Below are positions 5,680-52,282 of a stretch of 64,000 bases of DNA, piece after piece (position 1 is the first letter of the stretch; each line of letters starts with the position of its first letter). The stretch comes from Epithemia pelagica. Its lineage: Eukaryota > Protista > Bacillariophyta. Below the pieces are notes generated by a model, which saw only the letters and a list, made by a program, of their open reading frames with translations, had not been told where the DNA came from and did not search any database. The stretch is taken from contig OX337230.1 of assembly GCA_946965045.2 (NCBI GenBank), positions 3,906,001 to 3,970,000 on the forward strand, given 5' to 3'. The position numbers were made by a program, and so were the translations under genes.

Positions 5680-6100
5680 CCATCACCACGCAATCAAACA
5701 ACAACCTCCGTGCACATTGCAAGCCACTGACACGCGCTCCGTCAATCAACACGTTGACATACTCAACCGGATTGTTATTGTTATTGTTGTCGTTGTCATT
5801 GGTGGTCGTTTTGTCATGGTGGTTGTATCCATACTTGTTGTTGCTGTTGGTATAGCCAATGTGATTGGTCTCTGCGTTACGTTTGCCGGCTTCGTCCGAT
5901 GCTGTTGTTGCTACTGTTGCTTGTTCTCCGGGCATTGGCACCACCCACAATTGTTGTTGTTGTTGTTGTTGTGGATTGCCTGTTTGTGGATTGCCTGTTG
6001 TTGGTCGTCATTTTTGTGTGTACAAGATGGGCGGTCGACCACACCCAAGGTCGTCGATCGTCGTATTCGATGATATACTATGATAAAGGATTCCGTCGTC
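5680..6100 (-). pseudogene. Duplicated 5' fragment of the amine oxidase gene
   Basis: NNNPVEYVNVLIDGARVSGLQCAR matches NNNPVEYVDVLIVGAGVSGLQCAK at 1520-1600, with the GxGxxG motif degraded. The promoter 6050-6470 resembles 1850-2300. Confidence 0.75.
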
Positions 6101-6544
6101 CGGATCAGGATCAATACTCCCACCAGTAATCGAAACAACAACAACAACAACAAACGAGTAGTAAAACGACGGCACAACCGAAAACGAAGAATGGTGGAAA
6201 CGTGTGGCCCACAGAGAATGACAAAGAGCAGACGAGAATTGGCCGTCTCTCAATGATGATGGTAGCACGTTTCACCTACTAGCACCAGACTGCAACTCGC
6301 TTGGTTGGTTGGTTCTGCAATGCCTACTATATCGTTTTGTCGTCGTGTGTGCGGGTTTCTTTGTGATGATGATGATGATCGACAGGCCATATGCGACTGC
6401 AGCTCGTCATCGTTTCAATGTGACCTACACGCGACCAAATAAATCGGTCGCGCATTAGATGCGTGAAACGGTTGGATCTTTTGGCTCGATCACGCAGAGA
6501 GGGAGAGAGGAATCCGCCGCATCCCCCAAAGACTGCAATACACC

Positions 6545-8763
6545 ATGGTTCGTTCGTCCTTTTTATCGTCGGGTTTTGGACTGTCACGTTATGGCAGTGG
6601 TTCGGCGTCGTCCTTGTGGTCGTTTGGATCCTGCGGGTGGTCGTCTGCTGGAATCATGGCTGCCGCTAGTAGTAGTAGTGCCGAAAGGACACTGCCATCA
6701 CAACGTTGGTCTTCTCCGTTGAGAGGAACCGTGTCGTCTTGCTTGTTTTCCACTGGGAATCCCAACAACGAAAACGACGACCACCACCAGAACAAATCGA
6801 CTTCTTCTTCGTCGTCATCGTCGTCGTCTCCCATTCGTTTGGCCCATCGCTTGGATGGTTTGGATTCTCCAACCGTCTGGCATGAATTTACGCCACTTTC
6901 CAAACAACACCAATCTATTAATTTGGGACAAGGCTTTCCCGATTGGGATCCACCCAGGTTTGTCGTGGAGGCCCTGCAAGCCGCCGTCACACACCGTCAT
7001 GCCAATCAATATGCACCCTCCCAAGCCCATCCAGCCTTGGCGCAAGCCCTCGTGCACGAATATACACACCACTTGTGGAACAACGACAAGGACAGCGAAG
7101 ACCATACGCCGAGTCCGGACGCGGCCTGTTTCGACTTGGATCCGACGCAACATGTGGCCACAACGGTTGGTTGTACGCAAGCCTTGTATTGTGCCTTGCA
7201 AGGATTGATCAATGTGGGAGACGAAGTCGTCTTGTTGGAACCCGCCTTTGATATTTATCATTCGCAAGTGCGCATGGCCGGTGGTACCTGCGTCTTTGTC
7301 CCCCTGCGACCCCAACGACATATGACACCGACCGCAAGCAGCAACGACCAAACGAAGAAGACTACTTTGGTGGACCCCCCCAACGAATGGCATGCCAGTG
7401 ATGTGTTTGACTTGGATTTGGAGGAATTTCAAGCCGCCTTGTCGGACCGCACCAAAGTCATTTTACTCAATACACCGCATGTAAGTCTCCTCACAATCAT
7501 AATCGTACCCAGAATCGGCGCGTGTCCTGTGGTTCCTTGTTGTGTGTGTGTGTGCGTTTGGACCAGAGGACGCCGTGCGGAATTGGAACCGTAATGTTCC
7601 CAAACAGAAACACCCACCCAAAGAACATTGGACTCCCTACACCTCTCCTGCAATGGTACATTCATGTGTATACATGTGTGGAGTTGTAAGAGACTGTGAC
7701 AAACGTGCGAGAAAGAGAGAGAGAGGCACGCTGCGTGTTTTTGTTCCACCACTCGTCCTCTCTCATGCTACTTGTGTATATACTCTATAGAATCCTACTG
7801 GTAAGGTGTTTTCTCGGGCCGAATTGCAAGGCATGGCGGATATTTTGCAACAACCCGAATATCAACATATTGTGGTCATTTCGGATGAAGTGTACGAACA
7901 CATTGTCTTTGATCCCAACACACGACCCCACGTTTCCATGGCTACCATCCCGGGCATGTTTCATCGGACCTTGACCTTGAGTTCCTCGGGCAAAACGTAC
8001 GTATATAATCGTTCTCTCGTATCTATGTATTGTTGTTGTTGTTGTTGTTGTTGTTGTGTGTGTGTTGGTCGTTGCATCCTCGAGTATATAGGGATAGGGA
8101 TTGTGTGTGTGTGTTTTGTGGGTCTCACATGCTTTCCTGACGTGTCTTGTTGTTGTTGGTCGTTCCTTTCTTTCTTTTTGTCTTTCACACTTGGCCATTA
8201 GGTTTTCCTGTACGGGTTGGAAAGTGGGATGGGCGATTGGTCCTGCGCATTTGGTCCATGCTGTGACGGCCACCAATCAATGGATTACCTTCTCGGCACC
8301 GACACCGACCCAAGATGCCATGGCGCAAGCCTTGCGTCAAGCACGAACCGAGCCCTACCACGGCCATGCCACATATTTTGACTATGTGGCCGCAGAATAT
8401 CGTCGCAAACGCACCATTTTGCAAACGGCCTTGACCAACGCCGGCTTGACTCCCATTGTTCCCGATGGATCCTTTTTTGTCATGGCCGACACCTCTCAAG
8501 TCGAAATTCCCGAATCTTATTTGCATCACGTGACACGAGCCATGCCCCTTCGGACATTGGACCAACGACGCGTGGCTCCTCGCGATTGGGCCTGTTGTAG
8601 ATGGATGACCGAAACGGTGGGTGTCACGGCCATTCCACCATCAGCCTTTTATTCGACGCCCAATGTTCCCTTGGCTCAAAATTTGATTCGATTGGCCTTT
8701 TGCAAAACGGACGAGACATTGCAAGAAGCGGCCCGGCGATTGGAACAACACTTTGGAAGATGA
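6545..8763 (+). CDS. Kynurenine-oxoglutarate transaminase / glutamine transaminase K (class I/II PLP aminotransferase), 3 exons
   Basis: INLGQGFPDW, NTPH|NPTGK and PLP-lysine motif SSGKT|FSCTGWKVGW. Exons are about 6545-7480, 7791-7996 and 8202-8763 with GTAAGT/GTACGT..AG introns. The N-terminus is Ser/Arg-rich like a transit peptide. Confidence 0.92.
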
Positions 8764-9159
8764 GAGAGAGTGGGATCCTCTCTCAAAATCCGTGCCGACG
8801 ACGATAGGCATTTTCGATTGGAGAACTCTGCATATTCCCAAAGAGAGAGAGTTTTGATAGAAACACAACACCATGGAATCCAACGAAACGCTTTCAAGCA
8901 TCAATCTCCATTGAGGCATATAGTTTGGAGGGAGGTGTGATGAATCGTGGCCCTCCAAAGAGTCGCTGTACTCCTGCCAAAACTAATGAATGGGAAGGAC
9001 ATCCCCGCGCTCGCATGAATAAGTTTACCTAGTACAAAATAGCGTTTGACTCGAAAAGGAAGAATGATGATTTTCTTGCTCAATTGTCTATCCGAGAGTA
9101 TTCCACGACCGACGCCCCGGCCCAAGATGCAGAAACTACGAAGAGCCTCGCTGCTTGCT

Positions 9160-9627
9160 TCACTTGCTCTTGCTCTTAATAATCATATCTTGTGCTTCGA
9201 TTTTGCTATCCTGGGCGTCAATTTTCCGGTCCTGGGACTCAAGCTTGTCATTTTGTGACTCAAAGCGTACATTTTGTGACTCAAAGCGTGCATCTTGTGC
9301 TTCGATTCGTTTCGAGAAACCCTCCGCCTGTCTCTGCAAATTGTTGGTGGACACATCGTGTAGAGCGATCATCAGTCCGATCATCAGTGTCCCCATTGTG
9401 ACCGTAAGTCCCGCTAGTCCCAACGCAGTTTGCGTCATGGTCTCGTTCATTTCCTTATTCATTTTCGTCATGGTCTCGTTCATTTGTTTAACAACTTCCT
9501 TCGGAACCGAAGAATCTTGTTGGCCAATGGAGGACTTCCAGCGGCGTCCGAACAAACACTTTGATGAAAGCTTTTTAAAGGAGGAAGGAAACATGGTGCA
9601 ACACAGGGGCGTTACCTCATGAGGCAA
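9160..9627 (-). CDS. Orphan coiled-coil/TM/AQD-heptad protein, type 2 leader (MFPSSFKKLSSKCLFGRRWKSS)
   Basis: Intact ORF with basic acid-free leader, EMNETMT coil, TM LGLAGLTVTMGTLMIGLMIAL and xxAQD/SQN heptads. A near-identical copy lies at 51632-52099. Confidence 0.7.
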   Translation of the reverse strand: MPHEVTPLCCTMFPSSFKKLSSKCLFGRRWKSSIGQQDSSVPKEVVKQMNETMTKMNKEMNETMTQTALGLAGLTVTMGTLMIGLMIALHDVSTNNLQRQAEGFSKRIEAQDARFESQNVRFESQNDKLESQDRKIDAQDSKIEAQDMIIKSKSK

Positions 9628-9810
9628 TCCAGTTGTAGATGGACCGTGTTTTATGCTTGGAGGAGGAAAGTAATATCAATGCTATAGTACAATCTGCCGT
9701 TAAAAACTGCCCTACTAAGCACAACTGAGAGAACGAGATTGATGCTTGAAACGACGCCCCGACCCAAGATGAAGAAACTACAAAGAGCCTTTCTTGCTTC
9801 ACCAAGAGCC

Positions 9811-10368
9811 TTACTTGCTCCTGGACGCAATAAGCTTGTCTTGTGCTCGGATTTGGGAATCCTGTGCGTCCATTTTTCGGTCCTGAGCTTCGATTTTATC
9901 ATTCTGTGAATCAAAGCGAGCATCTTGTGCTTGGATTTTGGAATCCTGGGCGTCCAATATCCGATCCTGAGCTTGGAATTTATCATTTTGTGCTTCAAAA
10001 CGAGCATCTTGTGCTTCGATTCGTTTAGAAAAATTCTCCGAGTAATGTTGTATTTTAGAGTTGGACATACCGTGTAGCGCGATCATAAGTGTTGCAAGGA
10101 GTCCCGACAGTGCGAACATAAATCCCTGCTGCGTCTTGATGCTTTGAAAATGCAGCTCGTTCATCTTCTGTTTAATGCCGTTCATCTTCTGGTTCATTTC
10201 ATTAAACAGACTTTTCATCTCAATCATGTTTTCGCGCAAACCACTCTTCGTTGCATAATTGTCTTCTGTTCCGAGGGTGGACTTTGTGCGGTGTCCGCTT
10301 ACACACAGACGAGCACAACAGTGCTTGACGCGACTGTGGGATATACGCTTTGGAAGGTATCGAAACAT
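9811..10368 (-). CDS. Orphan coiled-coil/TM/AQD-heptad protein, MFRYLPK leader
   Basis: 185-aa ORF with leader, EMNQKMN coil, TM GFMFALSGLLATLMIAL and nine heptads of form hydrophobic-x-A/S-Q-D/N-x-x. Confidence 0.75.
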   Translation of the reverse strand: MFRYLPKRISHSRVKHCCARLCVSGHRTKSTLGTEDNYATKSGLRENMIEMKSLFNEMNQKMNGIKQKMNELHFQSIKTQQGFMFALSGLLATLMIALHGMSNSKIQHYSENFSKRIEAQDARFEAQNDKFQAQDRILDAQDSKIQAQDARFDSQNDKIEAQDRKMDAQDSQIRAQDKLIASRSK

Positions 10369-11030
10369 GGTGGACTATCGCGGGTTCTTTCGAATGTATC
10401 GCAGGAAGGAAAACTGTGGGCTCACAAAAAATGTTCTCTGCGGGTGACGGGAAAGTGGCAAGTCTGAGGGAGAGAGGAGACGTCCACTTTTGCTGCGCCA
10501 CGAAAAGACTGCAGGAGCTCCAGAGAGTCGAGAGTGTTTGGACGAAGAGGCGCCTGCACGCAAACCCAAAAGAACGGGAACAGTGAACAGTGAAGCTTGA
10601 TATTTTTGATATTCCATTGTTGTGGTGTGCGTCGGGAGTTGTGTGCCCCGTCCGTCACCTCAGGATATGAATATAACTACTACTATATACTTTATACTGG
10701 TAGACATGGAGGAGGCGGTCTGTACAGTTTGAGTTATAGTGGATCGTACGATTGTTGTGTGTTGAGGAGGCGGTCTGTACAGTTTGAGTTATAGTGGATC
10801 GTACGACTGACTCTCGTGGCGCTTCAAAAGTGGCTCTCTCTCAGACTTGCCACTTTCCCGTCACCCGCAGAGAACATTTTTTGTGAGCCCACAGTTTTCC
10901 TTCCTGCGATACATTCGAAAGAACCCGCGATAGTCCACCATGTTTCGATACCTTCCAAAGCGTATATCCCACAGTCGCGTCAAGCACTGTTGTGCTCGTC
11001 TGTGTGTAAGCGGACACCGCACAAAGTCCA
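10278..11030. repeat. Palindromic cassette 1: 191-bp inverted arms (10278-10468 and 10840-11030) around a 371-bp spacer
   Basis: The arms are reverse complements by direct comparison. Each contains about 100 bp of upstream sequence plus the first 30 codons of the divergent genes. Confidence 0.95.
10709..10806. promoter_or_regulatory. 43-bp direct repeat, two copies (period 55 bp), inside the cassette spacer
   Basis: GAGGAGGCGGTCTGTACAGTTTGAGTTATAGTGGATCGTACGA at 10709 and 10764, also present inverted in cassettes 2 and 3. The regulatory role is inferred only from its position between divergent genes. Confidence 0.5.
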
Positions 11031-11830
11031 TGGAGGAACGAATTCCTGAAGAGGCCGTTCCTGAACAGGATTACATGATTGATGTAAGCTATGAGATGGA
11101 ACAAGTTGAACTTGCTATGCAATCTGCAACGGAGGAAGGGCATTTTCTGGGGCGTCAGTGGTTGTTTCAAGGACGAGATTTGCGGGCGGAAGTTCGCTTG
11201 TCTTCACCCGAACGTCCGCTCGATGTCCACACCTACTTACGAGGAAACAATTGCCAATCCTTCGCCCATAATCGCCATCCCTTTGTGGCTGCTTTATATT
11301 TGTTGCGAGAGGCGGACGGAGGATCAGCTGTTTACATTTCGGCTCCTTTTTTGACAGACACGTACTTTGTCGACGAGTTGTGTCATTTTGCCAAGCCCAT
11401 CGAGGACGGAGGACGCTCACTACAAGTCCATCTTTTGCTAGGACCAGCGGTGTTCAATGAAACTGTGATCAGTCGTTTTATTGGCACAAGCCAAGTCCGT
11501 TTTGAATCTATTTCGCGTTTGAGCTTGAGGCGTTATGGGATTGACAACCCTGTACAAAATAGCGCGTACATGCACACAGAAGTATTAATCTCTACGGCCG
11601 GAACTATGATCGGCTCATACAATTATACGTTTGCTTCAAGATTCCGCCATCGTGAGGATGGCATCGTCATTGAAAATGGATCCATGGCCGACCGATATCG
11701 AGAACGCTTTCGGGACGTATGGAATATTTCTACTGTCTACACGCCACGTCGACCTCCGGACGAACCGAACGATGAATATTCCAAGGAACCTGGTTTTGTG
11801 CCGGAAGCGAAACGAGCGAAATATTCTTAA
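10940..11830 (+). CDS. PLD-superfamily (Nuc/Zucchini-like) single-domain protein fused to the MFRYLPK leader; HKD motif degenerate
   Basis: VYISAPFLTD (typical PLD N-terminal strand) and YMHTEVLISTAGTMIGSYNYT..HREDGIVI, which aligns with HxK(x4)D(x6)GSxN..E. C-terminus is EAKRAKYS. Confidence 0.72.
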   Translation: MFRYLPKRISHSRVKHCCARLCVSGHRTKSMEERIPEEAVPEQDYMIDVSYEMEQVELAMQSATEEGHFLGRQWLFQGRDLRAEVRLSSPERPLDVHTYLRGNNCQSFAHNRHPFVAALYLLREADGGSAVYISAPFLTDTYFVDELCHFAKPIEDGGRSLQVHLLLGPAVFNETVISRFIGTSQVRFESISRLSLRRYGIDNPVQNSAYMHTEVLISTAGTMIGSYNYTFASRFRHREDGIVIENGSMADRYRERFRDVWNISTVYTPRRPPDEPNDEYSKEPGFVPEAKRAKYS

Positions 11831-11869
11831 TATAATAAAATCGTCCGGCTTCTGATTTTTGTTTGTGCC

Positions 11870-12286
11870 TACGCCGCCGAGAATGGGCATTTGAAGGTGC
11901 TGCAGTGGGCAAGAGCGAACAGATGTCCATGGGACGAAGACATTTGTGCCTTTGCCGCCAGTAATGGGCATTTGGAGGCTTTGCAGTGGGCCAGAGCCAA
12001 TGGTTGCCCGTGGACTGACTACACTTGTACCTGCGCCGCCGAGGGTGGGAATTTGGAGGTGCTAAAGTGGGCAAGAGCCAATGATTGTCCATGGAACTCG
12101 AGCACTTGTACCGAGGCCGCTAGGAATGGGCATTTGGAGGTGTTGCAGTGGGCCAGAGCCAATGGTTGCCTGTGGAACGAAGACACTTGTACCTGGGTCG
12201 CCGAGAATGGGCATTTGAAGGTGCTGCAGTGGGCAAGAGCCAATGATTGTCGATGGTACCATCCATTGATCGCTCGGAGAATGTAG
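11870..12286 (+). pseudogene. Ankyrin-like GHLEVLQWARANGCPW repeat fragment (about 5.5 repeats of 25 aa), 5' truncated
   Basis: Repeats of AAxNGHLEVLQWARANGCPW. No clear ATG start; it begins about 40 bp after the PLD stop. Confidence 0.75.
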
Positions 12287-13569
12287 GGTCATCCGTGTCC
12301 TGGTAATGTATCGCACCATGAAACCTAGTATAGAGAGCCTCTATGTTCATCGTTTCAAGTTTCTCCGAAATCGAGGAAAAACGTTTCATATATTCTGAAA
12401 TATACAGAATTAATGAGATGAATACAGTTTGGAACAAGTCAAACGATAACAGTTGTATTACCGCGCCTACCTTCACAACTATGCCACTGCATATAATTCT
12501 GTTGAAACAATTCACACGGTAGCTTCAGAAATTTGAACGAGAAAAGCTTCAACCCACCACTCATGTCATACACAAACTGGGCTAAAGGAGTCCTCTTCAC
12601 GCGAGGTGAATGGAACCTGGGATCCTTTTCTTGATTCTTGTACAGCCGTAACTCGATACCAATGGGGCGGAATATAAGATTTCGTCCGCAAACCGCACTT
12701 CCAGGATTGAGACCATCAGGTATGGCTGTCACTGCATCCTTGTGATTTACGATTCTAAGGTGCATGATCCTACCCTGTCTCTCCAGTTCATAAAAGGCAC
12801 GTGCGGTCTCAAGGTTCCCCCATCTTGGTGAGGCAAACGAGCAGCAGTAGATGGGCTTTGGAATTTCATCACCTGAAGTGGCACCAAGCCAGAAAGTGAA
12901 GAGCGAAGCAAGAGCACCTACATCACGATGCGTGATGAGTAAAAGAAGCGCACCCGTCCTCTCCTATTTCACGATCTTTTGAAACTTACCGCCAAGGCTA
13001 TGCCCCGTCACGTGAATATTGAAACCAGGATGAGTCTCCAGCAATTGGAGCAAATGGCCAAGGATGACATCATACTTGTGGGTGTTTTGCCCACGTGTGC
13101 TAAATAAATAATTGTAGAACCCGTGATGGATGCCAATATGGGTTCCTTGTTTTATTGATGTATGGCAGCCTTCCAGTGGATTGGCAATTCGTGTTACAAA
13201 CGCATCAGCATCAACACACCAATCAGTGATTGTCACTGAGCCACGGAATGTCACTCGAATGGACTTTTCTACCCTGTGAAGTCCAACACAACAATGCTGA
13301 GGTTTCCATACGTATCGCAACAAATTTCAAATGAGGATTGCCATATAGGACACTTACTTGTCGACCGAAATACAGTACACGAGACTATTTTGCTCATTCT
13401 CATCATCAAAGACTACGATCATTTGTGCATCACGTAGCCTGGGTTTGTATACAAATGAGTCATACAGACCAAAGAATATGTCAATAGAATGGACGGTGAG
13501 AGTCACATGATATGAAAAACATATTTTTGGTTTGTATGAACAGTTCAGGAATGAGAAAGGATTTTTCAA
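12120..13569 (-). CDS. Class 3 lipase, multi-exon (boundaries approximate, 5' exons unresolved)
   Basis: VTFRGS..DW, IHHGFYNYL, VTGHSLGG|ALA, SFASPRWGN and RIVNHKDAVTAIP. Several GTAAG..AG introns. Confidence 0.75.
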
Positions 13570-15024
13570 TAATGGAGGAATGATGATAGTGCTTTATGAT
13601 GCCGCCATTCTACAAAAGGTTTCGGTAGTGAATCATGGTGTTTCAGAAGAAATATAACAGCAGAGGCAGGCATGGCAAGAATATTAAAAAGTCCAACAAG
13701 TTTACCCCATGGGACATGGCATGGGACATGGATTATGATGATGGTGTCAAGAATGGATATCATGAACGTCTTTTTATGAGAAATCGGGAGTTGAATTTTG
13801 GACCACAATTTGTTTTCTCATTTAGATATGAAAGAAGGGAAGGAGAAACTTAAGTTTCATAATGGAAAACCCATTATGCCTTTGTTGTGTGTGCAATGTG
13901 TGTGGGTGTTTCGCCTTGCCGTTCCACAAAAGACCCAATTTGCATTGCCCGCCCCCATTAAAGATGTTTATGCTTTTTCCAAATGAATCTCTATCGTATC
14001 CTCGGTGAATGTTTACAAACTTCAATATTCCATCCTTCTTCGATTTTCTTCCGTTTTTGTTCAACATGTTTACGGCTATGATGATCGTACTCGTCCTCGT
14101 TATCATCATGAAAAGTCTGCCTTTTTTACATCATCATCATCTTTCACCAATAATGCATATCTTAACAAGAAGACAAGCAATATTCAAAACAATAGAAAGT
14201 TCAACCATAGGTGGCCAGTACTTAATTTTCCAATATCATCGGAGACTACGACTACGACGACGAGTGTGCAGTTATTTCCAGGAAGTAGAAAACGATGTCA
14301 ACAACAACATCACCTATCATTTGATGGTCTACAGATTTCTTCCTCATTTGATCGTTTGGAACGTAGCTGTCGCAGTTCGATGAGTGCCCGAAAAGATGGC
14401 AGCGACGACGCTGGTAGTGATGGCGGCGGCGGTAACGTAGTAATTCTACATCCGCTCGGCGGAGTGGGGAGGCACGAGGAGGGGCTATTGACTCCGAGAA
14501 GGGCAATAGCTCCGAGAAGTGGACCGCCTTCTAAATCCGCGTCAGCGGATTTGGCGGTCCACGACGAGGAGCTATTGCCCGCCGAGGAGTCAATAGCCTT
14601 GGCAAGTGCCCCCACGACCAAGAGGGGATGTCGCTTGCTTCTATAGCCTCCGAGTCCCCCCTAATTAACTGTCACACTTTTTTCCCAGGACTGTTTTTTT
14701 GCTCCGCACTAGCTTTTTTAGCTCCGCACTTGCTCGCGTATGGGAGCGCAGCCGTCGTGGGCAATATAAGGCTTTATTAGACGAAAATCCTACTTCCATT
14801 CCGAGGAGCTATAGTAGAACTCTACATGAATAATACGTTCTTCATGGATTCGCCTTCACTATAGTCGATGACCTTTCAATTGCTTTTTTCTTTTGAGGTG
14901 CACCGAATTATGGAATTCCGATATTGTGGAGTTCATAGAGGGTTTCTCCTACAGTGAGAAAGTACATCAAGGATCAAGTTACATCATTCGCATGCCCGAA
15001 AGATACCCTGATGGACAATGAACC

Positions 15025-15662
15025 ATGAACTCCAAGTCCTTGCTATTATGCGTCCCCCTTGCCTTTTGTTTCCACGAAACTTTCTCGTTCCATGTGCAAT
15101 TCATTCCTCAATCCCTCGGTGCAAATAATGTCAGGAGATTCTTTTCTGCACCAAATCCTGTAGCTTCTGTCGAAAAAGAAGATTCCGAGGCTCGTCCAAA
15201 GCGGACCAAATTATCTCGTCCAGAGCGCAAAGCCTTGGAACGTGCAAGGAAAGCCAAAGCCTCATCGCCACAAGACGGCAATCGCAAAAGACAAACTTCC
15301 AAGGTCGATTCTCCCGAATTGACGGCCGAATCCACGTCCGAGCAGGTGTTGACGGCCATTAAGTGAGCCCAAAATAGTCGAGATACGGCTCAACTCAAGA
15401 GAATTGCAAAATTGTTGTTGGAGACGACAAATGACTCGTTTATGGCCAATGGTTCCCAAGGATCCTTGTTATCGCGACTGACCGTGGCGGCCTTGCGTCT
15501 CAACAATCATGCAATCGCCATGGACGCCATCTCCTATCGTCAAAATCAGTTTCGCAATGACATGAATCCTCTGGAAAGTTGTGCGATTGTACGAAATCTA
15601 TTGCGCGCTGGAAATGAAACAGAGGCGTACCAAATCCTCGAGGAGGAATTATCGTTGCCCAT
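15025..15662 (+). pseudogene. 5' half of an EngB/YihA-family GTPase gene (plastid-type bipartite leader), interrupted by the copia element
   Basis: Signal peptide ...HETFS-FHVQ and an in-frame TGA at 15364. Removing the element restores LSLP-MISTNED in frame with 24712. Confidence 0.8.
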
Positions 15663-16041
15663 AGTCAAAGTACACAGGATACTCTGTAGTAGCTAGGGGC
15701 AGTACCTATATTGGCGTGGAGGTGATCAAGTCTCCACGACAATACACTATAGAAGTTGTTTCACAACTTTCTGTTTGTTGATACTATAAGCTCTAGGTTT
15801 AGGAACTACATTCGATTCCTCATTTGATTCCTCACGAGGAATCAATTCCTCATTTACTCATGGAGGTTAGTTTGGAACCATTGATGCCAATGGCTAGAGC
15901 TTGGTTACTATGCGACGGGCAATGCCTTCTCTGGTAGTAAGGCATTGCTCTTGGATACATAGTGGGGACACGATTCTATGTCTCACAGATTCGAATCGTG
16001 ACTGCCATATCGCCTGTCCGTCACACTGATTAACCGCGACT
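15663..16041 (-). repeat. 3' LTR
   Basis: 379 bp, one mismatch seen versus 24330-24708. Confidence 0.95.
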
Positions 16042-16082
16042 CTCCCTCTTGACAAGGGCGATATCTTTTCAAACACAGTCAA

Positions 16083-19000
16083 TCACCAACCTTGATTCAG
16101 TTTCCGAATCCTCTCAAAAACATCACGGCAGAGTCCTTTGGTAAGATAGTCCGCTCGTTGCATCGTTGTTTCGATCTTGGAGATTCTAACTGTTGCATTC
16201 GTCCCTTTCACAGCTTCCCAGAACCAGTGGTATTTGTTGTTGAGGGATCTGGAACGGGACGAGAGGCGCTGGTTGTTGGCAAGAAGATACGCGCTGTTGT
16301 TGTCCTCATGGACTTCAGCAAAGATGGTTGGGGAGTCGTTGCCGAGGTCAAGGTGGTGGTTGATCTCGAACAAGATGTCTTGGAGCCACACAACAACACG
16401 CATGCTTTGCGAAAGCGCGACGTATTCGGCGTGGAAGGTACTGGTGGCAATCTCACTTTGGAGCTGAGATTTCCAGACCAAGGGACAGCCGCCAAAATGG
16501 ATGATGTATCCAGTGCATGATTTGGCACTGATCGATTCGTCCTCGGATTCACGGCCATGGAGGCCCATGAAATCCGCATCCACATAGCAATCAACCTTGA
16601 AGGCGGTTGTTGGCCGAAAAATTGTCCCGCAATCTACAGTTCTCCAGAGGTATCGGACAATCATTTTGATGGCTTGGGCATGGGATTGTTTCGGGTTGGT
16701 TGAAAAGCGAGCGACTTGGGAGACGGCAAAACTGATATCTGGCCGTGTGTTGGTGGAAAGGTAAAGGAGCATGCCGACGATGGAACGGTAGTTCCATTTT
16801 TCTTTCATCGGTGGTCCATCAGGGTCACTGCCAAGGCACACTTGGGAGGCTGGCACAAAGTTGCCATTGCAATTTGTCATGCCTGTGGCCTCAACGATCT
16901 TCTTAATGAGCCCTGGTTGGGTCATTGTAATTGTTCCATCTTTCCGAGTGAAATGGATGCCCAAGTACTCAGCAAAATCACTGTCCACGGAGAGCTCGAA
17001 TCCTCGAGCCTTGAGTCGTTTCACAAATTCGTTGATTGCGTCCATCGTCGGAGCGATAATACCACAATCATCCACCCAGAGAAACACCATCATGTTTTCC
17101 TTGAGGAAGACACATTCGTCGAGTTTGCTCTGGGTGAAGCCGTCGTCGAGCAAGGCTTGTCGGAGACGTTGGTACCACAACCGAGGTGCGACCGAGAGTC
17201 CATAAAGGCTCTTGTGGAGTCGGAGACAGGTTTTGGTGGTCTTGGTGGAGGAGAAACCGCGCGGGATGTGGATCCAAACAGGATCTTTTAACTCGGCCTG
17301 GACGAAGGCATTGTTGAAATCGATGCAAACCATTGCCCAGTTGCGAGCCAGGGCGAGTACCAAAGCAATACGGATCGAGGCCCAATTGACGACGGGTGAG
17401 TAGGTGTCGAAGTCGCCTTCTTGGAGATCCCCACGGACACAGTATCTGGCCTTGTATTTCTTGATGGTTCCGTCTGGGTGGCGCTTGCGCTTGAAGACCC
17501 AGGTACCAGGGATGATTCTTGATGTTGCTTCTTCCTCTGGAACCTCACTCCATGTTCCCTTGCTAGTTAATTCTTCAATTTCTATTCTAGCCGCTTCTCT
17601 CCAATGGTCGATATCCTTGTCTTGTCTTGCTTGTTCGTAGGACAGAGTGTCTGGATCTGAAATGGCAACCTTGAATCCACTGATGTCATCGAATTCGGCT
17701 TGATTGGCGACATAGGATTGTTGGGCGGCGTCCATATTCTCGATGAGACGACTTGGTGAACGACGGACACGGTTGGATCGTCGAGCAGATGGTGCGTCGG
17801 AAGGAGGATCGCTTGGTGGCTCCCTCTGAGAAGGCGGCTCCCTCTGAGAGGAGGGCTGTCTCGAGGAGAGAGACTCCCTCTGAGGAGAAGAGGGATGGGA
17901 GGCTGGTGCCACACGGAGAGGCGACAGTGGTGCTGGATTCTCCCTCTGTTCCGAGTGCACAGGGACAGGAGACGACGGGGAAGGCAAAACGAGCGGTTCC
18001 GAGAAGGAAACAGCAGGTTTTGGCTTTGGAGGTGTCGCCGCGTGCGGAGGGACATCGCGCACTGGCGTGTTTGGAGGTGGCACGGGAGGCGGAGAAGGGA
18101 GTGGGTCACTAGCCGACGGGGCAAGACGAGACGAAGCAGTCGTGGAGGGCTGGGTGGTGGGAGTGGCTGGGGGAGTTCTGGGGACAGAGACAGCTGGCGT
18201 GTCAACAGAAAGAGGGACAGACGGAACAGTTCGTTCCATAGACGTAAAAATATTGTCTTCAGAACGATGGTTGACAGCAGCAAGTGGTGCACTGGTGACA
18301 GCGTCGTCCACACAGTCATCGTTGTCGTACCCCGGTGAGTGCAGATGATTGGTCATGTCGCCAAAGACACTGTCAAGTCTGGAGATGTCTTCTGTGTTGT
18401 TGTTGTCTGCTGGAGTTGGCACCGTTGCAAACCAATCGTCGAAGACGACATGGTACTGCGGTGTGATGGCGCCCGTGGAAAGATTCAAAACGAGTGGTGC
18501 TGTGGTGGCATGGTTGGGAGAAAGTCCCATGTTCATCCCTCGTTGTGATCTTGGTTTCCATCTTGGCAGTTTCTTACCGTCTGCAATCCGTTTTTCCAGG
18601 ACGTACACGGGTGCTCCCCAGACATGAAGATCGTGTAGCCGTTTTTGTGGCCATCTCGTTCTTGAAAAGATATCGTGGGGTGAGACGCCAGTGGACGGAT
18701 TGGGAACGTGGTTGAAGACAAAGACGGCGTGGGAGACCGCCATGGGCCAGAGGGTGGGATCCGCTGTCTCAGGCCAGTGGATGCTGGCGTGGAGCATCAT
18801 CGTCCGAGCCATCGACATGATGGTTTGGATGGCTCGTTCGGCGACGCCATTCTGGTGATGGGCGCCTACTCCAGCGTAGGACCGAATCTGGGCAAAGGTT
18901 TCGAGTTGCCTGGTGTAGTCTTGTGCAGTGAAACAGCTGCCGTTGTCAGTGTGGTATCGTTGGGGAACGACACCCACATCCTTGCAACGTTGCTCGAAGG

Positions 19001-44376: not shown

Positions 44377-44646
44377 ATGGCGGCCACCACGAGCGATTTT
44401 AGTTATGATGAAAGTCTGCATCCACCCGCCATTGTCCACATTCCCGAAGAGTTTGTTCCCGATGACCCAGCCTCTCCGGGTCACATTGATTCTCCCTTGT
44501 CCTCCCCTCCCAATTCACCCAATGCCTGGGATATACGAGAGTTGGGAAACGACGAAGAAGACGAAGAAGAAGAAGACAACAAGCACAATCACTTGCAACA
44601 GCCACCCTTGTCCTTGCCCGAACTCAATCATTCCACAGCCACCAAT
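44377..44646 (+). pseudogene. N-terminal fragment of an unknown acidic protein, cut by the arm of cassette 2
   Basis: MAATTSDFSYDESLHPP..NHSTATN runs directly into cassette sequence at 44647. Confidence 0.45.
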
Positions 44647-44864
44647 TGCAGCTCGTTCATCTTCTGTTTAATGCCGTTCATCTTCTGGTTCATTTCATTA
44701 AACAGACTTTTCATCTCAATCATGTTTTCGCGCAAACCACTCTTCGTTGCATAATTGTCTTCTGTTCCGAGGGTGGACTTTGTGCGGTGTCCGCTTACAC
44801 ACAGACGAGCACAACAGTGCTTGACGCGACTGTGGGATATACGCTTTGGAAGGTATCGAAACAT
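44628..44864 (-). pseudogene. Truncated MFRYLPK-family gene (leader plus coil, no TM)
   Basis: Identical to the first 74 aa of 9811-10368, then LVAVE-stop. Confidence 0.8.
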
Positions 44865-45651
44865 GGTGGACTATCGCGGGTTCTTTCGAATGTATCGCAG
44901 GAAGGAAAACTGTGGGCTCACAAAAAATGTTCTCTGCGGGTGACGGGAAAGTGGCAAGTCTGAGAGAGAGCCACTTTTGAAGCGCCACGAGAGTCAAGAT
45001 TGATTGACAGTCGTACGATCCACTATAACTCAAACTGTACAGACCGCCTCCTCAACACACAACAATCGTACGATCCACTATAACTCAAACTGTACAGACC
45101 GCCTCCTCCATGTCTACCAGTATAAAGTATATAGTAGGAGTAGTAGATATATTCATATCCTGAGGTGACGGACGGGGCACACAACTCCCGACGCACACCA
45201 CAACAATGGAATATCAAAAATATCAAGCTTCACTGTTCACTGTTCCCGTTCTTTTGGGTTTGCGTGCAGGCGCCTCTTCGTCCAAACACTCTCGACTCTC
45301 TGGAGCTCCTGCAGTCTTTTCGTGGCGCAGCAAAAGTGGACGTCTCCTCTCTCCCTCAGACTTGCCACTTTCCCGTCACCCGCAGAGAACATTTTTTGTG
45401 AGCCCACAGTTTTCCTTCCTGCGATACATTCGAAAGAACCCGCGATAGTCCACCATGTTTCGATACCTTCCAAAGCGTATATCCCACAGTCGCGTCAAGC
45501 ACTGTTGTGCTCGTCTGTGTGTAAGCGGACACCGCACAAAGTCCACCCTCGGAACAGAAGACAATTATGCAACGAAGAGTGGTTTGCGCGAAAACATGAT
45601 TGAGATGAAAAGTCTGTTTAATGAAATGAACCAGAAGATGAACGAGCTGCA
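44647..45651. repeat. Palindromic cassette 2: arms 44647-44964 and 45355-45651, 390-bp spacer
   Basis: Direct reverse-complement match, with one extra 21-bp heptad unit in the left arm. Confidence 0.93.
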
Positions 45652-45991
45652 TTTTCAAAGCAACAAGACGCAGCAGGGTTTTATGCTCGCACAGTCGGGA
45701 CTCCTTGCAACACTAATGATCGCGCTACACGGTATGTCCGACTCTCAATTACAACATTACTCGGAGAATTTTTCTAAACGAATCGAAGCACAAGATGCTC
45801 GTTTTGAAGCACAAAATGATAAATTGCAAGCTCAGGATCGGATATTGGACGCCCAGGATTCCAAAATCCAAGCACAAGATGCTCGCTTTGATTCACAGAA
45901 TGATAAAATCGAAGCTCAGGACCGAAAATTGGACGCACAGGATTCCCAAATCCGAGCACAAGACAAGCTTATTGCGTCCAGGAGCAAGTAA
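45455..45991 (+). CDS. MFRYLPK-family coiled-coil/TM/AQD-heptad protein
   Basis: 178-aa ORF, close paralog of 9811-10368. Confidence 0.75.
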   Translation: MFRYLPKRISHSRVKHCCARLCVSGHRTKSTLGTEDNYATKSGLRENMIEMKSLFNEMNQKMNELHFQSNKTQQGFMLAQSGLLATLMIALHGMSDSQLQHYSENFSKRIEAQDARFEAQNDKLQAQDRILDAQDSKIQAQDARFDSQNDKIEAQDRKLDAQDSQIRAQDKLIASRSK

Positions 45992-46286
45992 GGCTCTTGG
46001 TGAAGCAAGAAAGGCTCTTTGTAGTTTCTTCATCTTGGGTCGGGGCGTCGTTTCAAGCATCAATCTCGTTCTCTGAGTTGTGCTTAGTAGGGCAGTTTTT
46101 AACGGCAGATTGTACTATAGCATTGATATTACTTTCCTCCTCCAAGCATAAAACACGGTCCATCTACAACTGGATTGCCTCATGAGGTTTGTCTATCTTC
46201 TCCTACAATTGACAACTGGAAGACGCGTCTCTCGCCCTTTTCCAGGATAGAATTCAGGACACCTAATAGATAAAGTATTGTGTACC

Positions 46287-48770: not shown

Positions 48771-49016
48771 ACGGATTTTTGTTGTGTGGTCGACTGGCCA
48801 TGTGCGACTGCAGGTTGTCATCGTTAAAATGTGACCTATCCACGACCCCAAAATCAAGTCGCGCATTAGATGCGTGAAATGTCGAAACTCCAAGATCCAA
48901 AAGATACACAAAAAGTTCTCTCTCGTCGTCCGTTGTTCTGTATTTTATCCGATTCTAGAGAAAGGAGACAAGAATCCGCGACATTGCAGCAGAATCCCCA
49001 ACAGCCGCAATACACC

Positions 49017-51235
49017 ATGGTTCGCTCGTCCTTTGTATCGTCGGGTTTCGGACTGTCACGTTCTTGCTGTGGCTCGGCGTCATTGTGGTCGTTTGGATCC
49101 TGCGGGTGGTCCTCTACTGGAATCATGGCTGCTGCTAGCAGTAGTAGTAGTGCCGAAAGGACACTGCGATCACAACGTTGGTCGTCTCCGTTGAGAGGAA
49201 CCGTGTCGTCTTGCTCGTTTTCCACCGGCAATCCCAACAACGAAAACGACGACCACCACCAAAACAAATCGACTTCTTCTTCGTCGTCGTCGTCGTCTCC
49301 CATTCGTTTGGCCCATCGCTTGGACGGGTTGGATGCCCCGACCGTCTGGCATGAATTTACGCCACTTTCCAAACAACACCAATCTATTAATTTGGGACAA
49401 GGCTTTCCCGATTGGGATCCACCCAGGTTTGTCGTGGAGGCCCTGCAAGCCGCCGTCACACACCGTCATGCCAATCAATATGCACCCTCCCAAGCCCATC
49501 CAGCCTTGGCGCAAGCCCTCGTGCACGAATATACACACCACTTGTGGTGGAACCCAACCAGCAGCGACAACGACAATGACCAGACCCCGAGTCCGGACGC
49601 GGCCTGTTTCGACTTGGATCCGACGCAACATGTGGCCACAACGGTTGGTTGTACGCAAGCCTTGTATTGTGCCTTGCAAGGATTGATCAATGCGGGAGAC
49701 GAAGTCGTCTTGTTGGAACCCGCCTTTGATATTTATCATTCGCAAGTGCGCATGGCCGGTGGTACCTGCGTCTTTGTCCCCCTGCGACCCAAACAACATA
49801 TGACACCGACCGCAAGCAGCAACGACCAAACGAAGAAGACTACTTTGGTGGACACCCCCAACGAATGGCATGCCAGTGATGTGTTTGACTTGGACTTGGA
49901 GGAATTTCAAGCCGCCTTGTCGGACCGTACCAAAGTCATTTTACTCAATACACCGCATGTAAGTCTCCTCACAATCATAATCGTACCCAGAATCGGCGCG
50001 TGTCCTGTGGTTCCTTGTTGTGTGTGTGTGTGTGTGGGTGCAAGAGGGTGTGGGTGGGTGGGTGTGCGTTTGGAGCAGAGGACGCGTTTTGGAATGGACT
50101 CCCTATACCTCTCCTGCAATTGTACATCCATGTATATGCTTTGTGGAGTTGTAAGAGACTGTGACCAAAGTACGAGATAGAAAGAGAGAGAGAGTCACGC
50201 GGTGTGTTTTGTTCCACCCCTCGTCCTCTCTCATGCTACTTGTGTACTATGTATAGAATCCTACCGGCAAGGTGTTTTCTCGGGCCGAATTGCAAGGCAT
50301 GGCGGATATTTTGCAACAACCCGAATATCAACATATTGTGGTAATTTCGGATGAAGTGTACGAACACATTGTCTTTGATCCCGACACACGACCCCACGTT
50401 TCCATGGCTACTATCCCGGGCATGTTTCATCGGACCTTGACCTTGAGTTCCTCGGGCAAAACGTAAGTATACTACAATCTCCCTCGTTTTTATTGTTGTT
50501 GTTGTTCTTGTGTGTGTGTTGGTCGTTGCATCCTCGAGTATATAGGGATAGGGATTGTGTGTGTCTGTTTTGTGGGTCTCACATCAGTTTCGAGAGGATG
50601 ATGCTTTCCTGACGTGTCTTGTTGTTGTTGGTCGTTCCTTTCTTTCTTTTTGTCTCTCACACTTGGCCATTAGGTTTTCCTGTACGGGTTGGAAAGTTGG
50701 ATGGGCGATTGGTCCTGCGCATTTGGTCCATGCTGTGACGGCCACCAATCAATGGATTACCTTTTCGGCTCCGACACCGACCCAAGATGCCATGGCGCAA
50801 GCCTTGCGTCAAGCACGAACCGAGCCCTACCACGGCCATGCCACATATTTTGACTATGTGGCCGCAGAATATCGTCGCAAACGCACCATTTTGCAAACGG
50901 CCTTGACCAACGCCGGCTTGACTCCCATTGTTCCCGATGGATCCTTTTTTGTCATGGCCGACACCTCTCAAGTCGAAATTCCCGAATCCTATTTGCATCA
51001 CGTGACACGAGCCATGCCCCTTCGGACATTGGACCAACGACGCGTGGCTCCTCGCGATTGGGCCTGTTGTCGATGGATGACCGAAACGGTGGGTGTCACG
51101 GCCATTCCACCATCAGCCTTTTATTCGACGCCCAATGTTCCCTTGGCTCAAAATTTGATTCGATTGGCCTTTTGCAAAACGGACGAGACATTGCAAGAAG
51201 CGGCCCGGCGATTGGAACAACACTTTGGAAAATGA
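49017..51235 (+). CDS. Kynurenine-oxoglutarate transaminase paralog, 3 exons
   Basis: Same motifs and intron positions as 6545-8763. Confidence 0.92.
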
Positions 51236-51631
51236 GAGAGAGTGGGATCCTCTCTCAAAATCCGTGCCGACGACGATAGGCATTTTCGATTGGAGAACTC
51301 TGCATATTCCCAAAGAGAGAGAGTTTTGATAGAAACACAACACCATGGAATCCAACGAAACGCTTTCAAGCATCAATCTCCATTGAGGCATATAGTTTGG
51401 AGGGAGGTGTGATGAATCGTGGCCCTCCAAAGAGTCGCTGTACTCCTGCCAAAACTAATGAATGGGAAGGACATCCCCGCGCTCGCATGAATAAGTTTAC
51501 CTAGTACAAAATAGCGTTTGACTCGAAAAGGAAGAATGATGATTTTCTTGCTCAATTGTCTATCCGAGAGTATTCCACGACCGACGCCCCGGCCCAAGAT
51601 GCAGAAACTACGAAGAGCCTCGCTGCTTGCT

Positions 51632-52099
51632 TCACTTGCTCTTGCTCTTAATAATCATATCTTGTGCTTCGATTTTGCTATCCTGGGCGTCAATTTTCCG
51701 GTCCTGGGATTCAAGCTTGTCATTTTGTGACTCAAAGCGTACATTTTGTGACTCAAAGCGTGCATCTTGTGCTTCGATTCGTTTCGAGAAACCCTCCGAC
51801 TGTCTCTGCAAATTGTTGGTGGACACATCGTGTAGAGCGATCATCAGTCCGATCATCAGTGTCCCCATTGACACCGTAAGTCCCGCTAGTCCCAACGCAG
51901 TTTGCGTCATGGTCTCGTTCATTTCCTTATTCATTTTCGTCATGGTCTCGTTCATTTGTTTAACAACTTCCTTCGGAACCGAAGAATCTTGTTGGCCAAT
52001 GGAGGACTTCCAGCGGCGTCCGAACAAATACTTTGATGAAAGCTTTTTAAAGGAGGAAGGAAACATGGTGCAACACAGGGGCGTTACCTCATGAGGCAA
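51632..52099 (-). CDS. Type 2 leader coiled-coil/TM/AQD protein
   Basis: Three amino-acid differences from 9160-9627. Confidence 0.7.
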   Translation of the reverse strand: MPHEVTPLCCTMFPSSFKKLSSKYLFGRRWKSSIGQQDSSVPKEVVKQMNETMTKMNKEMNETMTQTALGLAGLTVSMGTLMIGLMIALHDVSTNNLQRQSEGFSKRIEAQDARFESQNVRFESQNDKLESQDRKIDAQDSKIEAQDMIIKSKSK

Positions 52100-52282
52100 T
52101 CCAGTTGTAGATGGACCGTGTTTTATGCTTGGAGGAGGAAAGTAATATCAATGCTATAGTACAATCTGCCGTTAAAAACTGCCCTACTAAGCACAACTGA
52201 GAGAACGAGATTGATGCTTGAAACGACGCCCCGACCCAAGATGAAGAAACTACAAAGAGCCTTTCTTGCTTCACCAAGAGCC

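Follow-up and report, generated by a model that had tools for sequence, protein, structure and literature searches.

Organisation of the locus

The window, i.e. the whole stretch of 64,000 nucleotides of Epithemia pelagica that was analysed, contains a fused open reading frame (ORF) in which the leader of an orphan coiled-coil/TM protein family precedes a complete protein of the PLD type (Table 1). The fusion had been described in an earlier note on this DNA, made from the sequence alone, and the fused frame is open over its whole length. It forms a divergent pair with a partner gene that carries the identical leader and is thus the native owner of it. The starts of the two genes lie in a palindromic cassette whose inverted-repeat arms (197 nt) are 99% complementary.

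Table 1. Coordinates of the features described, in positions of the window
Feature	Position	Strand	Description
Partner gene of the divergent pair	9811..10368	-	185-aa member of the orphan coiled-coil/TM family; same 30-residue leader
Left inverted-repeat arm	10278..10474	-	106 nt of upstream region and first 91 nt of the CDS
Spacer between arms	10475..10833	.	359 nt; presumed shared bidirectional promoter region
Right inverted-repeat arm	10834..11030	+	Last base is the A of the PLD ATG
Fused ORF	10940-11830	+	296 aa, open; 30-residue family leader in frame with the 266-aa PLD-type protein
Grafted leader	10940..11029	+	30 codons, MFRYLPKRISHSRVKHCCARLCVSGHRTKS; in frame with the PLD ORF
Duplication junction	11029..11031	+	Left, copy of the family cassette; right, copy of the native PLD locus
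Native PLD ORF	11030..11830	+	266 aa plus stop; acidic N-terminal extension, one PLD domain, basic tail
Copy-specific Tyr>Phe	11387..11389	+	TAT>TTT, residue 120 of the 266-aa ORF
H-T-E motif	11573..11581	+	CAC ACA GAA, in place of the family H-x-K
GSYN	11612..11623	+	Second half of the PLD active-site motif, intact; varies hardly at all within the family
K-R-A-K in C-terminal tail	11810..11821	+	Family-conserved K-[KR]-x-[KR] in the alignment
Ankyrin-repeat fragment	11863..12286	+	81-nt units; duplicated with the PLD gene from the native locus

The spacer holds a 46-nt direct repeat with a spacing of 55 nt (10709-10809). In an alignment with the cassettes at 44.9 and 53.0 kb, the middle matches only as reverse complement, the spacer being flipped in orientation. 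The first 40 nt of the leader occur six times in the window, as three divergent pairs, where none is expected by chance; the other cassette copies lie at 44.6-46.2 kb and 52.7-53.7 kb. In a search of 5.8 billion proteins, the leader was confined to five coiled-coil proteins of the same assembly. The cassette heads five other open family ORFs and one truncated 78-aa ORF; the latter was produced at the other kind of outer end of the cassette, which indicates that the cassette makes arbitrary junctions. A "related CCATGGA junction", previously reported for the gene at 52283-52879, did not hold: the heptamer lies within continuous homology with other family genes, the arm there runs 111 nt into the CDS, and the resemblance is a coincidence due to two compensating indels (ACC-AT-GGAA against ACC-CTC-GGAA).

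Junction with the native PLD locus

Comparison with the other cassette copies of the window places the end of the cassette match at 11030, and a repeat search put the end of the 197-nt arm at the same base, in agreement with the earlier note. This base is common to both parents (1-nt microhomology), the final base of the arm being the A of ATG in AAG-TCC-ATG-GAG. On the right side, two leaderless copies of the same assembly (L001 and L010) represent the native locus, and they match the window (99.4% over 7 kb) from exactly 11030 onwards. In L001, positions 6001-9409 correspond to window 11030-14451 (99.4% identity) and positions 9396-12801 to window 14814-18219 (99.5% identity), while the sequence upstream of 6001 has no match. 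The native 5'UTR (...CTCAGCGACAGCA|ATG) is conserved in both leaderless copies and nine metagenome loci (L012-L020); contigs of X8 (from organism C and possibly RNA) and of the RNA metatranscriptome X13 have it too, and the ocean-metagenome relatives with this 5'UTR show about 95% protein identity. It follows from the leaderless copies, their conserved native 5'UTR and the start of homology at exactly 11030 that the leader was joined to a pre-existing, independent ORF at the start codon of that ORF, as first suggested from the sequence of the window. The leader is absent from PLD homologs elsewhere, the only PLD copies with it being in-genome descendants of the same graft.

Three grafted copies were found, two on this contig 14.4 kb apart and one on a probable other haplotype, and all their ORFs are intact. 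The identical junction thus occurs at three places on two contigs, with differing flanking variants (L008, which is the window, L009 and L011). Moreover, a short-read contig of X1, a run of the same organism, spans 11001-11325 without mismatch, with 30 nt on the left of the junction, just short of the 31-nt rule. The junction is real DNA and not a misassembly. An exact database look-up of the 296-aa leader-bearing product gave no match, which is biologically uninformative since the public gene caller began the gene at the internal ATG. As a separate observation, a random junction would not need to fall exactly at the ATG and in frame, a point against the history preferred below.

Such precision could be a property of the PLD gene itself if this gene were a selfish, gene-sized mobile unit whose nuclease helps it to spread or breaks DNA close to it, and which lands repeatedly behind host promoters and leaders. 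Indeed, lineages that are 94-98% identical in the gene share only the region from -78 or -60 to stop+1 or +22 and have unrelated flanks, at least four different 3' contexts begin 0-22 nt after the stop, and the L002 lineage has yet another 5' context from about the ATG. However, the piece duplicated here extends at least 7 kb past the gene, as in a segmental duplication and not a gene-sized insertion, and neither terminal repeats nor target-site duplications were seen at the boundaries that were read. Short metagenome contigs can also break or be chimeric at repeated genes, and differential retention of old paralogs could yield the same picture; we therefore consider a mobile PLD gene very unlikely. 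Family members have decayed to pseudogenes elsewhere (L002 and L021), in line with a probable loss of function of the window copy; the L021 paralog neighbours a MeaB-like GTPase gene and unannotated ORFs, and an examination of L021 for a Kelch array found no internal repeat. A search of JGI metagenomes for related loci returned a single locus, already in the set.

Fold and active-site motif of the PLD-type protein

The Pfam domain PLDc_2 (PF13091) matched the window protein with 23.7 bits (E = 4.6e-5), a score under the gathering cut-off of 27 and covering only the C-terminal half of the profile; it was matched by all 13 of the 13 aligned homologs (best E = 5.6e-8). A profile search of the PDB found MitoPLD (E = 1.2e-3) and Nuc (E = 0.017). 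The AF2 model (pLDDT 80.2, pTM 0.76) had 121 Foldseek matches in the PDB at E<=1e-3, including FAM83A/B, Nuc, PLD3/4, NucT, PLD2 and F13, with E = 3e-11 for FAM83A and E = 3e-8 for Nuc. These searches bear out the PLD/Nuc-like alpha/beta fold that the earlier note had proposed. The 266-aa protein is a single-motif, Nuc/Zucchini-like member of the PLD superfamily and probably a nuclease.

Both motif halves noted earlier, H-T-E and GSYN, are present. The catalytic His is kept, His182 of the 266-aa ORF (11573-11575) aligning with the His of Nuc and MitoPLD. The Asp of the HKD motif (HxKxxxxD, four residues after Lys) is indeed absent from the window copy, where it is Thr, but this loss is no part of the graft event as had been implied: Asp is replaced by Ser, Thr, Ala or Gly across the diatom family, whereas the bacterial two-HKD matches retain it. 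The C-terminus reads EAKRAKYS as described, and the K-[KR]-x-[KR] tail, conserved in homologs, resembles a classical monopartite NLS. The copy-specific Phe at residue 120 is probably benign, as other family members have Phe there.

Among the closest known systems are the single-HKD endonucleases Nuc (Salmonella plasmid pKM101, PDB 1byr) and H. pylori NucT, which likewise have one PLD domain per chain. The likeness extends to H-x-K ... G-S-x-N and the conserved Glu behind it (HREDG aligned to NSEN), and for Nuc to a TM of 0.75 on the target and a phmmer E of 0.009; by analogy, two chains of the diatom protein would be expected to dimerise into one active site. The diatom family, a eukaryotic one, differs from Nuc/NucT in a conserved N-terminal extension of about 85 residues, a basic C-terminal tail and Ser/Thr for the HKD Asp family-wide, and the window copy in having Glu for Lys.

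Zucchini/MitoPLD (PLD6; PDB 4ggj, 9lkx) is the best sequence-profile match in the PDB, over 70 residues only. It also has a single HKD, and mitochondrial PLD6 is dimeric (PMC10783504). The grafted copy may share with PLD6 an N-terminal mitochondrial signal, but PLD6 is anchored to the mitochondrial outer membrane by an N-terminal transmembrane helix, whereas the grafted leader is non-hydrophobic and very recently acquired. We know of no link, established or implied, between the diatom PLD family and piRNA-type pathways.

The top structural matches are the pseudo-PLD domains of FAM83 (DUF1669; PDB 4urj, 5lzk), in which the PLD fold serves as a scaffold without catalysis (PMC6008594). FAM83 proteins are vertebrate-only and the diatom protein has no sequence-level DUF1669 match; moreover, the diatom family as a rule keeps His, Lys and GSxN, Lys being lost only in the window copy and a few lineages. 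PADLOC gave nothing beyond a weak resemblance of generic PLD type to DrmC and DpdK (E >= 7e-4), which is no evidence for a defence role. A protein-atlas feature search returned generic PLDc_2 clusters labelled viral or bacterial, which are uninformative on origin.

The Lys-to-Glu substitution

Among the three grafted copies, only the window copy has GAA (Glu), which differs from AAA (Lys) by one base, at 11579. Lys is found in the 12 other sequences of the 90% clusters (12/12) and in most of the family; the alignment of copies and family thus bears out that Lys is the norm and that Glu results from a single AAA>GAA change unique to the window copy. About six family lineages have Asn or Thr instead of Lys although their proteins are otherwise intact, and such Lys-less members may have a non-catalytic role.

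The G at 11579 comes from one assembly, the window being identical base for base (100%) to contig ctg1299l of ENA ERZ21939226. The Glu codon could then be a base error, the window copy (copy B) truly encoding Lys. Logan contigs of X1, a run of this organism, have A at both 11579 and 11388, A at 11579 is likewise found in contigs from four runs, and all four runs of this organism contain only 84-88% of the sampled words. However, contigs drop or collapse minority paralog variants, and A is present in four of the five copies, so that A in these contigs does not refute G. Copies A and B differ by about 0.6% over 4 kb, a density at which copy-specific SNPs are expected, and the contig names suggest a long-read assembler of high base accuracy. 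We consider a base error quite improbable.

The five in-genome copies differ by seven nonsynonymous changes and one synonymous change, which fits neutrality (binomial p = 0.69; small counts). Against a related lineage, dN/dS is 0.25, and the contrast with the in-genome copies has a Fisher p of 0.054. Given these two patterns, the Lys-to-Glu change is most likely neutral or degenerative drift in a redundant paralog and not a designed decoy. The earlier suggestion of a decoy subunit found no evidence in its favour, the substitution pattern fitting relaxed constraint. The roles of His and Lys in single-HKD nucleases, and the formation of their active site by dimerisation, have been described (PMC10783504). 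As such a site needs two His and two Lys, a homodimer of the Glu copy should be catalytically dead. The substitution by itself is probably decay, although no decay beyond missense is seen in the three grafted ORFs.

The grafted leader and the predicted product

The leader ATG lies in a strong context (CCACCATG), while the internal PLD ATG has T at -3. Mitochondrial and nuclear isoforms made from these two starts, as put forward in the earlier note, are speculative. The leader contains eight K/R, three H and no D/E, has an amphipathic start (muH 0.63) and is not hydrophobic, the maximum Kyte-Doolittle value being 1.29 over nine residues with an Arg interrupting that 9-mer; AF2 gives pLDDT <50 across residues 1-44. 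The native N-terminus is strongly acidic (12 D/E in 40 residues), so the graft of a basic leader wholly alters the N-terminal character. This basic, acid-free composition fits a presequence, mitochondrial targeting being a candidate only.

A functional outcome can be imagined on this basis. The leader would be a working mitochondrial presequence that retargets a normally nuclear Nuc-like nuclease, and the dead Glu copy would heterodimerise with the 99%-identical Lys copies and thereby tune or block them. The leader composition and amphipathicity, the changed N-terminus and the family-conserved C-terminal tail agree with this proposal, as do the retention of three intact grafted copies, the dimeric action of single-HKD enzymes (PMC10783504) and the existence of scaffolding pseudo-PLD proteins such as FAM83, the top fold match (PMC6008594). 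Nevertheless, the leader is an orphan sequence from one gene cluster of one assembly, its own five substitutions are all nonsynonymous (5/5) with no sign of constraint, and Glu occurs in one of the three grafted copies only, alongside other missense changes. Such a gain of function appears distinctly unlikely to us.

Proposed origin of the chimeric gene

We propose the following history. The lineage has a compact, intronless, single-motif PLD gene preceded by a short 5'UTR that belongs to it. A stretch of 7 kb or more, beginning exactly at the PLD ATG, was duplicated and joined through the 1-nt microhomology to a copy of the palindromic promoter-plus-leader cassette of the orphan coiled-coil membrane-protein family. 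The duplicate thereby lost its native promoter and 5'UTR and came to lie behind the cassette, in frame with the first 30 codons of the family. If expressed, it would be from the cassette, most likely starting at the leader ATG, and its product would have a presequence-like N-terminus, basic and free of acidic residues, together with the conserved basic C-terminal tail of its own family. The fusion was then copied again, giving three copies, after which the phosphate-binding Lys of HxK changed to Glu in the window copy alone. On this reading, in which we place confidence and doubt in about equal measure, a duplication junction gave rise to a very young chimeric gene whose window copy is probably losing its function. 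The junction, its two parents, the direction and recency of the graft, the PLD fold and the uniqueness of Glu are established, and expression, targeting by the leader, dimerisation and loss of activity are predicted.

The grafted copies might also have been dead from the start, with no expression or expression at noise level, the in-frame leader being accidental and the three copies being carried along silently in segmental duplications. The grafted copies lack the native -78..-1 region that lineages otherwise conserve, a junction falls in frame by chance in one case out of three, the region is a duplication hotspot with Copia-type RVT_2 genes nearby, substitutions are dominated by missense changes, and the RNA contigs found, which come from other organisms, show the native form only. 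On the other hand, the gene takes precisely the place of a family gene, and the cassette in front of it also heads other open family ORFs as well as the truncated one, and none of the three grafted copies (0/3) has a stop or frameshift, though the elapsed time is short. We regard this course of events as rather unlikely. It is highly improbable, in our view, that a selfish PLD unit with CDS-precise boundaries moves between genomic contexts and repeatedly takes over promoters and leaders of its host, here those of the coiled-coil cassette, the grafted copies then giving a nuclease with a new, possibly mitochondrial, destination and the Glu copy regulating it as an inactive partner.

Under the preferred history of a young chimera from a duplication junction, the fusion is clearly a chimeric gene, though a fairly ordinary one. 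Chimeric genes arise at duplication breakpoints by capture of promoters and 5' exons, as in jingwei-type cases of Drosophila. The present locus shares with those cases the survival of both parental genes, a junction located to the base, an in-frame fusion and a very young, lineage-specific product. It differs from them in having a palindromic bidirectional cassette as donor, a junction exactly at the start codon of the recipient without any intron, and a fusion protein that is predicted.

The birth of a diatom gene can be followed here with unusual completeness, both parents, the pre-graft locus, a base-exact junction, three daughters and the earliest function-relevant mutation being present in one assembly. 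The locus could be used to test how promoter-plus-leader cassettes spread in fast-turnover regions of diatom genomes, and whether new N-terminal signals are functional from the outset. A literature search for a diatom PLD-like nuclease family found no paper. With its single HxK…GSxN motif, no Asp, an N-terminal extension and an NLS-like tail, this family merits a family-wide study, catalytic residues having been lost in it repeatedly and its genomic context having changed repeatedly as well.

As a minor observation, the frame of the ankyrin-repeat fragment downstream of the PLD gene reaches back to about 11863 with no upstream ATG, and its only listed in-frame start is the TTG at 11891.

Leader cassette and junction

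The ORF listing of the window gives, at 10940-11830 on the plus strand, an ORF of 296 aa; five other window ORFs begin with the same 90 nt. These leader-bearing ORFs form three divergent pairs (about 10.3/10.9 kb, 44.8/45.5 kb and 52.9/53.5 kb), and a 40-nt leader probe gave six matches in the window against zero expected. At the first pair, each arm of the inverted repeat (see table) covers 106 nt of upstream DNA and the opening 91 nt of the coding sequence. As the earlier note had read it, the right arm stops at 11030, on the A of ATG in AAG-TCC-ATG-GAG, and the protein encoded 3' of this point (MEERIPEE...) is unrelated to the coiled-coil family of the cassette. Positions 9614-11030 are the reverse complement of 44774-46188 (96.4% identity) and 6524-10200 matches 48996-52672 (95% identity); the window left of 11030 thus duplicates the cassette region of the family. 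Both parents have the A at 11030, a microhomology of 1 nt. The CCATGGA of the family gene at 52283-52879, previously taken for a related junction, arose by chance through two compensating indels within continuous homology.

The palindromic cassette also yielded a truncated junction product, the 78-aa ORF at 44.6-44.9 kb, so that the outer ends of the cassette create arbitrary junctions. The spacer of the first cassette (10475-10833) is opposite in orientation to those of the other two (44971-45348 and 52986-53357), an outcome that would be expected from recombination between 99%-identical arms.

Features of the window and related loci (PLD, phospholipase D-like gene; codon 184 is counted in the 266-aa PLD ORF)
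Feature	Location	Strand	5' side	Codon 184	Description
Inverted repeat	arms 10278-10474 and 10834-11030				197 nt, 99% complementary, 359 nt apart
Truncated left gene, second cassette	44631-44864	-			78-aa ORF: leader, 48 family residues, unrelated sequence, stop
Ankyrin-repeat units	11863-12286				four 81-nt units of LEVLQWARANGCPW type, directly 3' of PLD stop
PLD copy L008 (window copy)	ctg1299l		leader	GAA (Glu)	
PLD copy L009	ctg1299l; L009:9911-10801		leader, 2 mismatches	AAA (Lys)	13.4-14.4 kb upstream; ends 2601 nt before window start
PLD copy L011	ctg1208l		leader	AAA (Lys)	
PLD copy L001	ctg1309l		native 5'UTR, downstream of SF1/KH gene	AAA (Lys)	
PLD copy L010	ctg1313l		native 5'UTR, downstream of SF1/KH gene	AAA (Lys)	
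Pseudogene L002	metagenome contig, six samples; L002:5885-6787				85% nt identity; ATG>ATT, 7-nt frameshift, premature TGA
Paralog L021	same assembly, ctg1288l; L021:4904-5675				42% identity; frameshift near N-terminus, HSN for HSK

Native and grafted copies of the gene

The window is identical to part of contig ctg1299l in ENA assembly ERZ21939226, which contains five copies of the gene. In the two leaderless copies, the upstream sequence ends in CTCAGCGACAGCA directly before ATGGAGG. The homology between L001 and the window begins exactly at 11030: L001:6001-9409 corresponds to window 11030-14451 (99.4% identity) and L001:9396-12801 to 14814-18219 (99.5%), and upstream of L001:6001 the comparison of the two sequences gave no match to the window. 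The three leader-bearing copies share an identical junction. Nine ocean-metagenome loci (L012-L020), whose protein is about 95% identical, have the native 5'UTR before the gene as well, as do contigs of two other sequencing runs (X8 and X13, one of them an RNA metatranscriptome); this makes the leaderless state ancestral. Among 5.8 billion proteins, the leader peptide was found in only five others, all members of the coiled-coil family from the same assembly; it thus belongs by origin to that family and not to the PLD gene. Taken together, the base-exact start of homology, the ancestral leaderless copies and the family-restricted leader strongly support the proposed graft of the leader onto an independent ORF.

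The divergence between grafted and native copies, about 0.6%, is no greater than that between the two native versions (98.5-98.8% identical), which puts the age of the graft within the range of within-species variation. A diploid carrying two loci would fit the contig pattern: ctg1309l and ctg1313l would represent the native locus, and the grafted one would be ctg1299l, where about 7.6 kb of shared sequence is duplicated in tandem, together with ctg1208l. About 7.6 kb around the L009 copy is a tandem repeat of the window copy region, with 95-99.4% identity.

The region around the PLD loci is one of fast turnover. Copia-type retrotransposon genes (RVT_2, gag) flank several of them (L009:1-3441, L010:10930-12801 and L011:9213-12801). 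An insertion of 3.6 kb, which may be a transposon, lies about 300 nt upstream of the PLD gene on ctg1309l (L001:2073-5701); it has minus-strand ORFs of 335 and 686 aa and is absent from L010.

Fold, family and active-site motif

Pfam PLDc_2 matches the protein with E = 4.6e-5, through the C-terminal half of the model only and with 23.7 bits against a cut-off of 27; it is matched by all 13 aligned relatives (best E = 5.6e-8). Searching PDB sequences with the protein retrieved Nuc (1byr, E = 0.009) and MitoPLD, and the family profile gave MitoPLD at 1.2e-3 and Nuc at 0.017. The AlphaFold2 model, built with 39 homologs, has a mean pLDDT of 80 and a pTM of 0.76, with pLDDT below 50 for residues 1-44 (leader and native protein start). 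Foldseek with this model returned FAM83A (3e-11), FAM83B and Nuc (3e-8, TM 0.75 on the target), then PLD3/4, NucT, PLD2 and F13, which places the body in the PLD superfamily as had been suggested. In the HMMER alignments, H-T-E...G-S-Y-N of the query faces H-x-K...G-S-x-N of Nuc and MitoPLD, and its HREDG is aligned to the conserved Glu stretch. Single-motif PLD nucleases build their active site as a homodimer, with His as nucleophile and general acid and Lys binding phosphate (PMC10783504). Like Nuc and PLD6/Zucchini, the diatom protein has a single motif, and by their precedent its active site would be that of a homodimer.

The PLD-like family is of diatom type; of 1.84 billion cluster representatives, 91 match it at E <= 1e-3, and the best named match, from Nitzschia inconspicua (about 40% identity), is called 'Phospholipase D-like domain-containing' in UniRef. 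A literature search found no paper on the family, which is uncharacterised; the fold is already known, and so are chimeric genes that form at duplication breakpoints, as in the present event. In homolog alignment A2 and proteins P0004, P0007, P0008 and P0011, the N-terminal extension holds a conserved (I/V)D(L/V)xYE..MQ motif, present twice in longer homologs. Most members read H-[ST]-K-x4-[STAG]-x6-G-S-Y-N. The HKD Asp is indeed absent from the window protein, but [STAG] at its position in most members makes this loss a family trait, outside the graft event. Lys is the family norm, as the reading of HxK changed to HxE presupposed: Glu occurs in the window copy only within the aligned family representatives, Lys is replaced by Asn or Thr in about six of them (the Asn of GSxN is missing in a few), and among 13 other sequences in two 90%-identity clusters every one covering the motif has HTK.

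Copy-specific glutamate and probable relaxed constraint

At the level of the assembly, the window copy genuinely departs from the others in having HxE for HxK. A contig of run X1 (same organism; GATC-type loose ends suggest a Hi-C library) spans 11001-11325 without mismatch, covering 30 nt of leader and 295 nt of PLD sequence, where the bridging rule needs 31 nt. X1 contigs carry A at 11388 and 11579, the two positions unique to the window copy; the A at 11579 neither supports nor overturns the Glu codon, because A is shared by four of the five copies and minority variants are lost from contigs.

Judged against a consensus of the copies and an outgroup, the private changes of the window copy are Y120F and K184E, R75C being common to it and L009. 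The five copies together show seven nonsynonymous changes, one synonymous change and one TAA/TGA stop difference, and the 7:1 ratio is compatible with neutrality (binomial p = 0.69). A comparison of L011 with the metagenome lineage gave a dN/dS of 0.25, marginally different from the pattern among the in-genome copies (Fisher p = 0.054). Elsewhere, members of the PLD family decay (L002 and L021). A decoy subunit and dual mitochondrial and nuclear isoforms, both raised earlier, appear less likely than simple relaxed constraint.

In L002 there is also an intron-like insert, about 118 nt long and bounded by GT..AG, which the window gene lacks; the neighbours of L002 are different, with HSP70 downstream. 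L021 is surrounded by a MeaB-like GTPase and unannotated ORFs, with no Kelch genes beside it.

Leader, start codons and C-terminal tail

The 30 leader positions include eight K/R, three H and no acidic residue, and the leader start is amphipathic (muH 0.63), a composition that appears presequence-like. The leader has no hydrophobic core and does not resemble a signal peptide or membrane anchor. Leader substitutions are all nonsynonymous (S10C and C22F in L009, three residues in the 52283 gene). The leader ATG has the context CCACCATG, and the internal ATG is flanked by T at -3 and G at +4; under scanning initiation, these contexts speak against substantial leaky scanning as far as the internal ATG. 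At the C-terminus, described before as NLS-like, K-R-A-K lies within a K-[KR]-x-[KR] tail that is conserved in the family, often after P-G-Y or N-P-Y (A2), and is compatible with a putative classical NLS.

Flanks of the gene

In closely related lineages (94-98% identical in the gene), homology to the native locus is limited to the gene, between unrelated flanks. It extends from -78 to stop+1 (95%) in L012 (2277-3156) and from -60 to stop+22 (98%) in L024 (494-1376); L002 has other flanks, with its 5' boundary at about the ATG, and X8 and X13 yet another 3' flank straight after the stop. The comparison of L012 and L024 with L010, where L010:5919-6823 is the native locus copy, hints that the gene may change its genomic context as a gene-sized unit. 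That it is itself a mobile or unusually rearrangement-prone unit of this size is nevertheless given a low probability, because the piece copied in the window event continues past the gene for 7 kb or more and no terminal repeats were seen.

The ankyrin-repeat units are present at the native locus and absent in the related lineages. Their frame can be followed back to about 11863 without an upstream ATG, the sole listed in-frame start being TTG at 11891, and this stretch is an ankyrin gene fragment.
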